In this document: positions 5,432-26,467 of the stretch, piece after piece
How the letters are laid out: each line of letters starts with the position of its first letter
Numbering within the stretch: position 1 is the stretch's first letter
NCBI GenBank assembly: GCA_025603075.1
Contig: MU626307.1
Span: forward strand, 56,901-120,900
Reading direction: 5' to 3'
Origin: Neoconidiobolus thromboides FSU 785
Lineage: Eukaryota > Fungi > Entomophthoromycota
DNA: 64,000 bases
Made by a program: the position numbers and the translations under genes
The notes under the pieces: generated by a model
The model's input: the letters and a program-made list of their open reading frames with translations, nothing else
The model's database searches: none
What the model was told of the DNA's origin: nothing

Positions 5432-6592
5432 CATGTTAATTTCAAACATCTGATGATAATTTCTCAATAAATAAAACATCATAGATTTAGCAACTATTCA
5501 AAAGTTCTAATACTTTATTTTATATACTAATTGTTTTTGGAGTTGTAGAGTATTAGACCAAATATGCTTGTCATTATTTTAAAATCGAATAAAAGGTTTT
5601 AATAATCTAAAACTGTGTTTATTGCTTATTTATTACAATTGTTTCTAAAAATTATAAACCCATTTAAATTAAATTCACATCAATATCTTTATAGTCATAT
5701 TTACTAATATCATAAACATTATATCGTTTATAATGTTTTCAACAAAATGCCTATTATTTTATTATTATGACCCTAAAAATTGTTCTTATAAAAACAACAA
5801 AAAGTTAAATTTGATAAGTTAGTAATAATAACTATCAAAATTAGGAGTAAAATAATTAATAATTAATGTGTTAGTAGTAGTATGCTAGTAAAAATCATTA
5901 AATGTTATCAGTGATATACTAATAGTTTTTTATAGAAGGCACTTCGTCCTTTAAAAGTTCATTAATCATGCTAGATTCTTATTGTGATTAAGATGAAATC
6001 TATATAATATTATATAAGCTTAATAAAAACAAGAATAAACTTCATTGTATAAATTATAATGTTATTCAAACTAATTTTATTAGATAAGATAGTAAAAAAA
6101 AATTTTTTAAATATGTACTACTATCGTTTTTAAATTTTAACAACTATTGCTCTTGAAAACAAGTCAAGAAATAATTTTGTAAAATGTTTAATTTAAGCAA
6201 TACAGAATTTACTCAAGTCCAATGTTTTTATTATTTATTCGATAAACTATATAAACACTACAATGTTTTTAGATAACGAAAATCCTAAAAATTTACTTTT
6301 TCAATTCTACCAAAGTAAAAGTTAAAAATTTGCCATTTTTAGTTTAATAAGATCTGAATTTAAAACCAGCAAACCTTGAAGGTATGCAGCATGATTGGCT
6401 ATTTTTCTTAATGATATTCAAAGTCTGTCAGCGATCAAAAATAACTTTAATAAATACAAAATTAAAGAAGTAATAAGTGACTGCTTTTTTAAAAAACTTA
6501 AATATTTGTTACTTCAAAGTACAAGTTGATAGTTATAATAGTTATATAATTTTAATTTTTATAGAGTTTATTTGTTTTTAGTTTATAAACAT

Positions 6593-9500
6593 ATGAAATT
6601 ATCCAAACTTTCTTTTTTCATTGTGCAGGTCACATGGATTATCGCTAGAAAAAGTTACAATGATGGCGATGACTGCCCAGCTTCAGGAGAAAAATGTGCT
6701 TATGATGGGGGCTCTTACCAACTAAGGGACTATGGCACCCCTCCATGCTGGAGCGCTGTCGATAAAGAATGGAAGTGCAAACCTAGAGTAAATGAATCGA
6801 ACTGTCCAGAGGGATTTATAGATGTTGAAGACACATGTGGTTTTGATCCTCTTCCTCCACCACAATGTCCTTTACCTGATGATAATTGCAAATTGGAAGG
6901 CAACATATTTATTGCCAAAAATGCAAGTAAGAAAGAAGACGATTTCCCTTACTGTTGGAATAAAAATCCTGATAATACATGGTCCTGTAAAAGTAGCTCG
7001 GCAGAATGCGATATCAATGGCAAGGATTTAAGAGAATGTTTCAAACTAAAACCTGTTTGTCCAAAACTCCCAACAGAAACATGTCGCTTTGGTTTAACGC
7101 TAGACGTGCCAGCGAGTGGACCATATATCAACAATGCAGTATGCTGGAGCAAGAATTCAAATGGTGAATGGGAATGTAAAAAGAAAGAAGGTTTTGATTG
7201 TGCTCAGTATGAACTAGATATTACAAACTGTTTCAAAAAGAAATTATGTCCCGAAAGAAAAGATCCATGTCTTTATGATGCTAAAGTTTATAAAATTGAT
7301 ACTATAGGTGCACCAAAATGTTGGAGTAAAACTAGCTTTGGTTGGAATTGTAAATTCCCTCCAGCAGGAACCGATACATGTAAAAATGAAGATACTGATA
7401 TCGATACGTGTTTTCCAGAAGATAAAATATCATGCCCTAAATCTTATTATGATGCTTGCAAATCTGGTAACTCGACCTATATTGCTGGCGATGCAGGAGA
7501 TAACGATTGTTGGTCAAAAACCAAAGACGGAGATTGGAGCTGTAGGCCAAAACCAAATAATTCAAGCATTTGTGGTAGAGGTGAAGTTGATGTATCTATT
7601 TGTGGGGTACCTCCATTACCCTCTCCTGATTGTCCAACCAAATACAATGAAACCTGTAGATCGATTGATGACTCAGATGAATTGGCTGGAGAGCCAAATG
7701 AGTTCGTTTGCTGGAAAAAGAACGCTTTAAAAAAGTGGGTATGTTCGCCAAAAACCAATGGAAAAAACACTTGTGAGCCTGGAAATTTAGATATAACCTC
7801 GTGTACTTTAGAACCCCCACCAGTGCCGGAGTGCCCCAAAGATTACTTCACACCATGTAAAGATATCGATAATAAAGAGTTCTTAGCGGGCAAACCATTA
7901 GGCAATGTATGCTGGTATAATTCTGGCTTCAATAGATGGGGTTGTACAGCGAGGTCTAAAGCAACAAATCTATGTGAACACGGCTTATTAGACATTACTA
8001 GATGCAATATTGAACTTCCCACCCCTCCTTCATGCCCATCAGATACTGAAACTACATGTATAACACCGAATGGCATAATAAACAGATCCAATGTCCAAAA
8101 TAACGTATGCTGGTCAATTAAAAACAAGAAATGGCATTGTAATCCAAAACCCAAAGGTAGTGGGAATTGTGATGTAGGTGAGCTTGATATATCCCAATGT
8201 TCTGGTATATCAAAACTACCATTTAATTGCCCAAAAGAATATCAAACTCTTTGTAAAAGCAAGGAGGGTTTTAAGGCTTTTGGTAGAATAAAGCATAACT
8301 TTTGCTGGAAGCAAGACACATCCACTAAATCATGGGAGTGCCAAACTAAAGTAAATGGTACATGTAAAGAAGGTTTTCTCGATATACAGCTATGTTCTAA
8401 ACCAGAAATTCCTGCTTTTAACAAAATGTGCCCTTCAAAGTATGAAACTTACTGTAAATCTAAAGACGGTTATAAAATGGCAGGAGAGGAAACAAAAGAC
8501 ATATGCTGGGAAATCGATAGTAATGGAGATTATATTTGCGAGGGTTTATTAGAAAATACGAATAGATGTAAACCATTAAAAATCAACATTTTAGCATGTA
8601 GTTTGCTCCCTCCAAGCCCACCAAAGTGCCCAACAAAGTCAACCGATTATTGTATGGCTGGAGGGCGTAAAATTATAGCTGGAGAAGTTAAAATTAATTC
8701 TTGTTGGGGTATTAGTCCTTCAGGAGGATATTACTGTATTCCTAAAGAATCCAATGGAACTTGTAAACCAAGCTTAGTAGACATAGATAAGTGTAATATT
8801 CCTGCTCCTCAACCCACCCCTTGCCCTAAAAGAAATGATAAATGTCATTATCAAGGAAAATCATATGGAATTTATGATGAGTCGACACCAAAATGTTGGG
8901 TGAAAGATCAAGAGAAATGGGAGTGTGAGCCTATTTTTTCCCAATCAGCAAAATGCCCAGGTAATGCTGTTGATATTAGCAAATGCTTTCCTCCACTGCC
9001 AAAATGCCCTGCCTCCTTTACCAGTGTATGTCAAGCTCCAAATTCTGAGCAAAAAATTATGGCTGGGAAACCTGGCAATAATGTTTGCTGGAATAAAAAT
9101 AAGCAAGGAGATTGGGAGTGCTACCCAATGGATATTGGTGAGAAATATTGCAGTCCAGGATTTCTAGATGTCACTACATGTTCATTACCTTACCCAAAAG
9201 TTCCATCATGTCCAAAGAGTTATACAGATGTAAGTTTTAGTGACAAGAAACTCGTCCTAGCTGGTGAGCCTGGAATAAATGTATGTTGGTCTTTCCAAGG
9301 AAATAATAGATGGATTAGTTCACCAAGGCCAAACAAATATTTGGCATGTAAACCAGGTGACTTAGATATCACTACATGTAACTTTGTTAAACCAAACCCT
9401 CCACCATGTCCAGAAAAATATCAAACGCGCTGCACTAAGGGAAGTGATTCAATTTTAGCAGGTAAACCTGGAAAGAATGTATGCTGGAGATATAATGGAA

Positions 9501-10165
9501 AATCGTGGGATTGTAATCCTAAGGAAGAAAGTCTTGAAGAGTGTAGATATAATGAAATAAATGTTAATAAATGTAGTTTGGAAGCTCCAGAAACCCCAAG
9601 CTGTCCTAAGGATTATTTAACAGAATGTGAAGATAGTGAGGGTAAAAAACATACTATTAGTAACCCTGGAGGAAAAATATGTTGGTTTTATGATTTTTCA
9701 GATGGATTTAATTGGAAATGCTCTTCGCCTTTGAGCAAAGGTAAAGTTGGATGCAATGATAATCAATTAGATATCAGCAAATGTGAGATTAAGAAGCCCG
9801 CTACTCCAGAATGTCCACCTATTTCAGCAGTTTGTAAGATGAATAACAAAGTTTATGAACTCAAAGATTCTAAGTCACCATCTTGTTGGAAGCCCGGTTA
9901 TGTAGGATATGATTGTATTAATAAGGTGGAAGGCAATCCAGCTGAAGTATGCCCATTGGGCTACGTTAATAAAGATATATGTAAATATGAGGTACCGGAA
10001 TGTCCTCCCAAAACCTCTATTTGTCGTTCTGAATACAGTATTCATAAATTTAGTGATGAAAGTACTCCTAACTGCTGGTCAAAGTTCAACTACGAATGGA
10101 AATGTATGAAGCCTGAACATGGTGATAAGTGTCCTATCAATTCTATTGACATTAAAAAATGCTAA
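6593..10165 (+). CDS. Secreted cysteine-rich protein with 18 tandem ~66-aa 6-Cys repeats (unknown family), intronless
   Basis: 3.57-kb open frame in AT-rich DNA; ATG 6593 begins MKLSKLSFFIVQVTWIIA (signal-peptide-like); 18 CW motifs counted, each in a CP..C..CW..W.C..C..DI..C unit. Confidence 0.9.
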   Translation: MKLSKLSFFIVQVTWIIARKSYNDGDDCPASGEKCAYDGGSYQLRDYGTPPCWSAVDKEWKCKPRVNESNCPEGFIDVEDTCGFDPLPPPQCPLPDDNCKLEGNIFIAKNASKKEDDFPYCWNKNPDNTWSCKSSSAECDINGKDLRECFKLKPVCPKLPTETCRFGLTLDVPASGPYINNAVCWSKNSNGEWECKKKEGFDCAQYELDITNCFKKKLCPERKDPCLYDAKVYKIDTIGAPKCWSKTSFGWNCKFPPAGTDTCKNEDTDIDTCFPEDKISCPKSYYDACKSGNSTYIAGDAGDNDCWSKTKDGDWSCRPKPNNSSICGRGEVDVSICGVPPLPSPDCPTKYNETCRSIDDSDELAGEPNEFVCWKKNALKKWVCSPKTNGKNTCEPGNLDITSCTLEPPPVPECPKDYFTPCKDIDNKEFLAGKPLGNVCWYNSGFNRWGCTARSKATNLCEHGLLDITRCNIELPTPPSCPSDTETTCITPNGIINRSNVQNNVCWSIKNKKWHCNPKPKGSGNCDVGELDISQCSGISKLPFNCPKEYQTLCKSKEGFKAFGRIKHNFCWKQDTSTKSWECQTKVNGTCKEGFLDIQLCSKPEIPAFNKMCPSKYETYCKSKDGYKMAGEETKDICWEIDSNGDYICEGLLENTNRCKPLKINILACSLLPPSPPKCPTKSTDYCMAGGRKIIAGEVKINSCWGISPSGGYYCIPKESNGTCKPSLVDIDKCNIPAPQPTPCPKRNDKCHYQGKSYGIYDESTPKCWVKDQEKWECEPIFSQSAKCPGNAVDISKCFPPLPKCPASFTSVCQAPNSEQKIMAGKPGNNVCWNKNKQGDWECYPMDIGEKYCSPGFLDVTTCSLPYPKVPSCPKSYTDVSFSDKKLVLAGEPGINVCWSFQGNNRWISSPRPNKYLACKPGDLDITTCNFVKPNPPPCPEKYQTRCTKGSDSILAGKPGKNVCWRYNGKSWDCNPKEESLEECRYNEINVNKCSLEAPETPSCPKDYLTECEDSEGKKHTISNPGGKICWFYDFSDGFNWKCSSPLSKGKVGCNDNQLDISKCEIKKPATPECPPISAVCKMNNKVYELKDSKSPSCWKPGYVGYDCINKVEGNPAEVCPLGYVNKDICKYEVPECPPKTSICRSEYSIHKFSDESTPNCWSKFNYEWKCMKPEHGDKCPINSIDIKKC

Positions 10166-22076: not shown

Positions 22077-22150
22077 TGCTTCAGCCCAGGTTCGAACTGG
22101 AGACCTTCACCTTGTAAGGGTGACGTGATAACCAACTACACTACCGAAGC
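22077..22150 (-). tRNA. tRNA-Val(UAC)
   Basis: 74-nt cloverleaf GCTTCGG..CTGAAGC-A, anticodon arm TCACC-CT TAC AA-GGTGA, TTCGA loop; T-run downstream. Confidence 0.95.
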
Positions 22151-26215: not shown

Positions 26216-26467
26216 ATGAACCCATTACTGTTACTTACATTTACATTAAACTTAGTCTCTGCAGCCACTTTACTCGTTGGTGGTGGTATATGTCCAAACA
26301 AAGAGGATACTTGTACTACTTCAGATAACCAAAAATTTACTAAGGGAGCACCAAACGCCCCATTATGCTGGTATAAATTTGATGAAAATGATACATTTAG
26401 TTGTAGATATAGCTCAGATGGTATATGTATGGAAGGTATGGGAGAAGTTAATTTCAATACTTGTTAA
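26216..26467 (+). CDS. Secreted 83-aa single-domain 6-Cys protein, same domain as the 18-repeat protein
   Basis: Signal-like MNPLLLLTFTLNLVSA then CPx5C x17 CW x10 C x7 C x11 C-stop. Confidence 0.75.
   Translation: MNPLLLLTFTLNLVSAATLLVGGGICPNKEDTCTTSDNQKFTKGAPNAPLCWYKFDENDTFSCRYSSDGICMEGMGEVNFNTC

Follow-up and report, generated by a model that had tools for sequence, protein, structure and literature searches.

The gene described here lies in a 64,000-nucleotide stretch of contig MU626307.1 (positions 56,901 to 120,900; hereafter the window) from Neoconidiobolus thromboides FSU 785, an aphid-killing fungus of the order Entomophthorales. Its open reading frame (ORF) occupies window positions 6572 to 10165 on the forward strand, with the first ATG at 6593, and translates into 1190 residues with no stop or frame break. 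The repeat periodicity of the protein is unbroken from start to end, so the gene needs no intron; NCBI nr holds the exact 1190-residue sequence as a predicted protein. Upstream the DNA is AT-rich and non-coding. The stop codon TAA (10163-10165) directly follows the last cysteine, the protein ending in IKKC, and AATAAA-like signals are found 3′ of the stop. The locus is an intronless gene whose product, of ~130 kDa, consists of a probable signal peptide and 18 modules only.

The product has 106 cysteines, and the dipeptide CW recurs 18 times with a period of 59-69 residues. Delimited from the first (C1) to the last (C6) cysteine, the 18 units measure 54-61 residues each and are joined by linkers of 5-11 residues, mostly proline-rich (Table 1). 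C1, the proline after it (P2), C3, the tryptophan after C3, C5 and C6 are invariant in all 18 units. The spacing is C1-x6/7-C2-x16-21-C3-x9-12-C4-x6-11-C5-x9-11-C6, and the units end in the motif C5-x5-D-I-x2-C6. An earlier first-pass annotation, made from the letters and an ORF list, had described this frame as 18 tandem six-cysteine units; the unbroken frame, the 18 CW dipeptides and 18 separate profile matches bear out the number. Its description as six-cysteine units holds for 17 of the 18 and fails for unit 14, which has four cysteines with serine at both C2 and C4. It had made the C3-C4 and C5-C6 intervals slightly too long, and the C-terminal motif is shorter than it proposed. The two subtypes that it distinguished are separated as noted by the C1-C2 spacing: units 1, 2, 4, 12, 17 and 18 have C1-x6-C2 (the short subtype), and the remaining units have C1-x7-C2. 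The accompanying CW motifs hold for most units of each group, P-x-CW in the short subtype and AG-x-P-G-x-x-CW (the AG subtype) in the other.

Table 1. Coordinates of the 18-unit gene, its units and two further coding features of the window
Feature	Window position	Strand	Remarks
Single-exon gene, 1190-residue repeat protein	6593..10165	+	ORF list, translation, NCBI nr match
Probable signal peptide, residues 1-19	6593..6649	+	only hydrophobic window; same start in every complete paralogue
Unit 1, residues 28-82	6674..6838	+	short subtype, 6 Cys
Unit 2, residues 92-149	6866..7039	+	short C1-C2 spacing, long C2-C3 loop, 6 Cys
Unit 3, residues 156-213	7058..7231	+	6 Cys
Unit 4, residues 219-273	7247..7411	+	short subtype, 6 Cys
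Unit 5, residues 281-337	7433..7603	+	AG subtype, 6 Cys
Unit 6, residues 347-404	7631..7804	+	AG subtype, modelled by AlphaFold2 (pLDDT 93.5)
Unit 7, residues 414-471	7832..8005	+	AG subtype, second unit of two-unit model (pLDDT 96.1)
Unit 8, residues 481-536	8033..8200	+	6 Cys
Unit 9, residues 546-601	8228..8395	+	6 Cys
Unit 10, residues 613-669	8429..8599	+	6 Cys, second Trp replaced by Tyr
Unit 11, residues 679-734	8627..8794	+	6 Cys, second Trp replaced by Tyr
Unit 12, residues 744-798	8822..8986	+	short subtype, 6 Cys
Unit 13, residues 805-863	9005..9181	+	AG subtype, 6 Cys
Unit 14, residues 873-929	9209..9379	+	4 Cys, C2 and C4 both Ser
Unit 15, residues 939-994	9407..9574	+	AG subtype, 6 Cys
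Unit 16, residues 1004-1064	9602..9784	+	6 Cys, longest C3-C4 hairpin
Unit 17, residues 1074-1130	9812..9982	+	short subtype, most divergent unit, 6 Cys
Unit 18, residues 1137-1190	10001..10162	+	short subtype, C6 is last residue of protein
Single-unit family gene: signal peptide and one six-Cys unit	26216..26467	+	P0028 (KAI9295950.1) maps here
Polysaccharide deacetylase ORF (chitin-deacetylase type, E 8e-34)	58909-59670	-	49 kb downstream

In residues 1-19 a charged beginning leads into 13 hydrophobic residues that end in IIA, as in a signal peptide, the cleavage site being inferred. Hydrophobic windows occur at the N-terminus only and the 18-unit protein has no transmembrane (TM) segment or glycosylphosphatidylinositol (GPI)-type tail, as the first-pass annotation had stated; it had also seen correctly that the protein ends on its last cysteine, C6 of unit 18. 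The missing hydrophobic tail rules out a GPI-anchored or membrane protein. Because of its signal-peptide-like N-terminus, the even number of cysteines in every unit and the absence of a TM or GPI tail, the protein is very probably extracellular.

Pairwise identity among the 18 units averages 29.5% (range 16-46%), Tandem Repeats Finder detects no DNA-level tandem repeat in the gene, and the units are as distant from their own neighbours as from the units of other genes. Strong divergence, the missing DNA repeat and equal closeness to other genes' units mark the array as old by sequence comparison, in agreement with the first-pass annotation. A recent repeat expansion is ruled out by the absent DNA-level repeat and the between-gene unit distances. 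Structural residues are kept in all 18 units at ~30% identity, which argues for long purifying selection on each unit. A second 18-unit family gene of N. thromboides (P0002, KAI9294023.1; C106:36800-41600, minus strand) has units more alike, with mean identity 49% and up to 73%, vs the mean of 29.5% in the window gene, which points to an array that is younger or has been homogenised.

Any claim of novelty for the module rests on missing relatives, for which a word-based search is insufficient: searching 5.8e9 proteins in that way returned nothing besides the 18-unit protein itself. An exhaustive profile search of 1.84e9 representative proteins was therefore run, and at the cut-off of expect value (E) 1e-3 or better it yielded 29 proteins. 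The family profile matches the 18-unit protein at E = 6.8e-183 in 18 separate matches, which excludes chance. The named relatives all belong to Entomophthorales, namely N. thromboides, Entomophthora muscae, Conidiobolus coronatus and Massospora cicadina; six of the 29 are ~1 kb contigs from public read assemblies (Logan), and the statement on species covers the named relatives. The annotations of the named relatives are hypothetical, uncharacterized or "secreted protein" only. By this profile search the module is a domain family restricted to Entomophthorales. We found no description of it in the literature on Entomophthorales secretomes or cysteine-rich proteins, or under the relatives' locus tags.

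The conserved family profile (alignment A2) reads C-P, D6, C, G11, P-x-C-W, K28, aromatic-x-C, G41, C, G46, D/N-I, C, and all 18 units of the window gene match it. When the N. thromboides genome was searched with the profile, the module was matched at 99 places spread over about 20 loci; the genes concerned have 1, 2, 4, 6, 8, 10 or 18 units. Every complete family gene starts with a signal-peptide-like segment, several end exactly on C6, and Pfam shows no fusion to a known domain among the 29 relatives.

One single-unit gene lies in the window itself, 16 kb downstream of the 18-unit gene (Table 1). Its family profile match covers 26291-26464, and C6 is the last residue of its unspliced frame. 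The public model KAI9295950.1 (87 residues) leaves this unspliced frame after residue 77 and differs in its last 10 residues; since ending on C6 is the family norm, the predicted intron may be spurious. Another family gene, P0004 (C106:15318-19400), carries a low-complexity tail rich in glycine, tyrosine, lysine and proline with repeated YKP-type motifs. An assembly gap of Ns lies within its repeat array, so that the public 483-residue model has probably missed some units. In P0008 the C-terminus is a short glycine/tyrosine tail. In C. coronatus, P0018, P0019, P0035 and P0036 share one 56-kb contig and represent at least three genes with a four-cysteine module that has no C1 and C6. Their spacers are tyrosine- or histidine-rich, not proline-rich, and their consecutive locus tags indicate that the genes are probably close together.

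The window has about 27% G+C and contains intron-containing eukaryotic gene fragments (protein kinase, TCP-1, NUBP, polysaccharide deacetylase) plus tRNAs. The 18-unit gene has an rRNA methyltransferase upstream and the KDEL receptor and NUBP downstream, and these housekeeping neighbours rule out a functional gene cluster. The polysaccharide deacetylase ORF is, at its distance from the repeat gene, too far away to suggest linkage. Eight tRNA genes were found, two of them directly abutting (55015-55087 and 55088-55158 (+)) and the others at 22077, 28093, 28477, 33396, 56219 and 58619. The scores are identical within each of three tRNA pairs, a sign that these may be duplicated copies.

The module was compared with known families and folds. 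Pfam gave 0 matches to the 18-unit protein at E up to 1, singleton noise only with 83 single units at E up to 10, and no match to the 29 relatives. The PDB sequences gave no match to either the protein or the unit profile. The ESM Atlas, queried with the whole protein and a two-unit part, returned no usable neighbour. With one- and two-unit models, all matches from PDB Foldseek, VIA wide, VIA second look and the viral BFVD fell below significance, and the only recurrent disulfide-rich ones among them were the furin-like modules of EGFR/HER2 and granulin beta-hairpin stacks. By these sequence and model searches the module is without a known family or detectable known fold. Two of the checks proposed at first pass, a unit profile run against Pfam and protein databases and a single-unit model run through Foldseek, thus gave relatives without a known family in the one case and a confident model without a significant fold match in the other.

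Individual candidate families fared no better, and the first-pass annotation, which had called the domain unrecognised on the basis of spacing, was right on each that it had named. CBM14 (PF01607) had no match in the protein (E up to 1), in the 83 units (E up to 10) or in a six-frame search of the whole genome, and it is ruled out by this absence together with its different cysteine spacing (C-x13-20-C-x5-6-C-x9-19-C-x10-14-C-x4-14-C). A tachycitin/Avr4-like fold was likewise rejected for the module. CBM18/hevein (PF00187), with eight cysteines in about 40 residues, has no Pfam match here; the genome's three CBM18 matches lie at other loci, and profile-profile comparison with the module gave a probability of 0.2%. 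The same holds for CBM19 (PF03427), with no Pfam match, three genomic matches elsewhere and an hhalign probability of 4%. WSC, CFEM, LysM and the fungal dockerin (CBM10) are rejected for want of a Pfam match in the protein, the 83 units and the 29 relatives. Kunitz/BPTI (PF00014) is rejected as well, there being no Pfam signal and no BPTI-like chain from Foldseek or VIA.

The AlphaFold2 model of unit 6, built on the 83-unit alignment, is confident (predicted local distance difference test (pLDDT) 93.5, predicted template modelling score (pTM) 0.75) and has four short strands, forming two hairpins, plus a C-terminal turn. The two-unit model reaches pLDDT 96.1 and keeps the linker above 90, at a pTM of 0.74. 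It suggests a fixed orientation between neighbouring modules, with the proviso that inter-domain confidence may be inflated by alignments made up of repeats that are paralogous and come mostly from one genome.

For the disulfides we examined 140 domain instances aligned to the profile, in 98 of which all six cysteine positions are aligned. C1 and C6 are jointly absent in 19 instances (C. coronatus, Massospora and one N. thromboides gene), and C2 and C4 are jointly absent in two, unit 14 and the last unit of a paralogue on contig C246. These two losses are independent, since the counterpart on C158 of the C246 unit keeps both cysteines. Some relatives have an extra cysteine pair within the C2-C3 loop. 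Apparent single-cysteine gaps, where inspected, were effects of alignment trimming, and in the proteins checked by eye cysteines were lost solely in pairs. Gain and loss in pairs gives C1-C6 and C2-C4, and by elimination C3-C5, as the probable disulfides. Beyond the cysteines, the columns conserved in the family are P2, D6, G11, P23, K28, G41, G46 and I/V/L50, with D/N49 at 97%. Three columns hold aromatic residues in the 140 instances: column 15 in 55%, W26 in 100% and column 33, two before C4, in 91%. Variation in sequence and length is greatest in the C2-C3 and C4-C5 loops.

On this basis the module can be pictured as a pair of short beta-hairpins held by three disulfides. A C1-C6 bond would join the ends of the module, so that the modules would hang side by side from a stiff proline-rich backbone formed by the linker chain and would not be set in line. 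The invariant tryptophan, the second aromatic and the third, semi-conserved aromatic could form a contact face; the first-pass annotation had inferred a multivalent extracellular binding protein (adhesin, lectin or effector scaffold) that would use a conserved tryptophan pair. The 18-unit protein would then be a non-enzymatic multivalent extracellular binder, gaining avidity on a repetitive surface; as a first guess at the ligand we propose a polysaccharide surface, which could be insect cuticle or, in the fungus's own wall, chitin or glucan. We hold this reading tentatively, as a serious possibility that is far from secure. A binder is suggested because the protein has no catalytic domain, anchor or processing sites, its modules are kept by selection and its family is expanded in one order. 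That the ligand would be a polysaccharide is a guess, preferred because the architecture is like that of the peritrophins, the Jacob lectins and the CBM18 arrays, because there are three aromatic columns and because the genome shows few canonical chitin-binding modules.

A further-reaching version makes the module the founder of a new carbohydrate-binding domain family, one for chitin or cuticle, whose small disulfide-rich fold would also be new. The family would have arisen in the insect-pathogenic Entomophthorales, reached ~100 copies here and assumed the role that arrays of CBM14, CBM18 or LysM have in other fungi. We consider this rather doubtful. If it were true, the module would serve in attachment to the insect cuticle, or in shielding the wall from host chitinases and immune receptors.

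Several points weigh against a polysaccharide binder. The conserved tryptophans could equally be core residues of a 55-residue domain, and in the fold searches the fold resembled no known carbohydrate-binding module. The linkers are proline-rich, unlike the serine/threonine-rich linkers of many wall lectins. The C2-C3 loop is the most variable part, which fits recognition of protein targets as well as glycan binding. The six-frame Pfam counts in the 24.6-Mb genome, 3 CBM18, 3 CBM19 and 0 CBM14 vs 99 matches of the new module, are lower bounds for the CBM families, and the stiffness of the backbone depends on the inter-domain confidence qualified above.

Other functions would fit parts of the same evidence. 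The protein could belong to the matrix of the conidial coat or wall and have a structural or adhesive role there, its modules being inert protease-resistant beads with no specific ligand, possibly oxidatively cross-linked. In favour of this, the mature protein is rich in lysine (11%), proline (9.6%) and tyrosine (3.7%), and the linker of the two-unit model is stiff. The tails of P0004 and P0008 point the same way, that of P0004 being reminiscent of DOPA (3,4-dihydroxyphenylalanine)-type glues. So do tyrosinase-rich secretomes: tyrosinases that are secreted count among the indicator groups of Zoopagomycota secretomes (PMC9391592), and C. coronatus has an expanded set of them (PMC12387763). The 18-unit protein itself, however, lacks a tail of this kind, C6 being its last residue; it carries neither a GPI signal nor a PIR-like repeat that would link it to the wall, and family members of one or two modules (80-150 residues) look soluble. 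That 18 diverged units are under purifying selection, at surface-type positions (K28 and D49, for example) too, also argues for more than a spacer, and we regard a matrix role as unlikely. The variable C2-C3 loop, differing most in both length and sequence, could instead belong to a multi-headed inhibitor or decoy, whose modules would bind a host protease (of the phenoloxidase cascade, for example), a chitinase or an immune receptor, with divergence broadening the targets. Kunitz/BPTI inhibitors have ~55 residues and three disulfides with the connectivity 1-6, 2-4, 3-5 that is inferred here, and small inhibitor domains commonly form tandem arrays; the family is limited to a lineage of insect pathogens, and its members of one or two modules are effector-like. 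Yet Kunitz, Kazal, TIL, pacifastin and similar families gave not even a weak Pfam match in the 83 units, no BPTI or other inhibitor structure came up in the fold searches although the PDB holds many, and the family is large too in mainly saprotrophic or facultative species of the Conidiobolus type. An inhibitor array also seems improbable.

The single-module genes of the same genome, including the one in the window, indicate that a free module is viable, as would be expected if the 18-unit protein were a polyprotein precursor, cut in its linkers into 18 free modules like progranulin or Ustilago Rep1. No linker has a dibasic Kex2-type site, the only KR lying inside unit 12, and this rules out a Kex2-processed precursor; the linkers are moreover proline-rich and predicted to be ordered, and cleavage into free modules is on the whole very unlikely. 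A relic without function, or an artefact of annotation, is scarcely credible as an explanation of the gene: a 3.57-kb open frame at ~27% G+C would be very unlikely without selection, the structural residues are kept in 18 units despite ~30% identity, and there are relatives in four species.

As natural enemies of aphids, flies and cicadas the Entomophthorales are important, and how they adhere to, enter and hide in their hosts has, in molecular terms, to our knowledge hardly been worked out. The analysis defines for them a probably secreted module, restricted to the lineage and with many copies in the genome, that folds confidently in the model and is like nothing solved. With 55 residues and three disulfides it is an easily expressed candidate for binding and structural studies; with chitin or cuticle as its ligand it would represent a new CBM family, and with a host protein a new effector scaffold. 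With the family profile the module can be annotated in further genomes of Entomophthorales, in which it is currently "hypothetical". Across zygomycete fungi, over two-thirds of the small-secreted-protein orthogroups common to at least two species lack similarity to Pfam, and Entomophthoromycotina has more than 180 indicator groups (PMC9391592, Chang et al. 2022). The module family is probably among these indicator groups; the module is not described there, and 18-unit arrays of 130 kDa exceed the small-secreted-protein definition used.

The secreted array of small disulfide-rich modules is a familiar kind of protein, while the module itself was previously undescribed. Kunitz/BPTI arrays share with it a size of ~55-58 residues, six cysteines, tandem occurrence, a central beta-hairpin and a short C-terminal helical turn. 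Their cysteine spacing differs from the module's, and the connectivity C1-C6, C2-C4, C3-C5 is for the module a probable one, deduced from paired losses, and is common to unrelated families. The furin-like modules of the EGFR/HER2 ectodomains and the hairpin stacks of granulin are also small disulfide-pinned beta-hairpin modules, arranged in stiff rods. The closest architectures are those of the peritrophins (CBM14), the Jacob lectins of Entamoeba, with six-cysteine chitin-binding domains, and the lectin-like CBM18 arrays of Batrachochytrium, which have one to nearly twenty copies of a six- or eight-cysteine module per gene and work by multivalent polysaccharide binding. From these the module differs in cysteine spacing, in a fold absent from solved structures, in having no sequence or profile similarity to them and in its proline-rich rather than serine/threonine-rich linkers. 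Like them, the 18-unit protein has a signal peptide, in its case a probable one, followed only by tandem small cysteine-rich modules, with conserved aromatic residues, low-complexity linkers and no catalytic domain.

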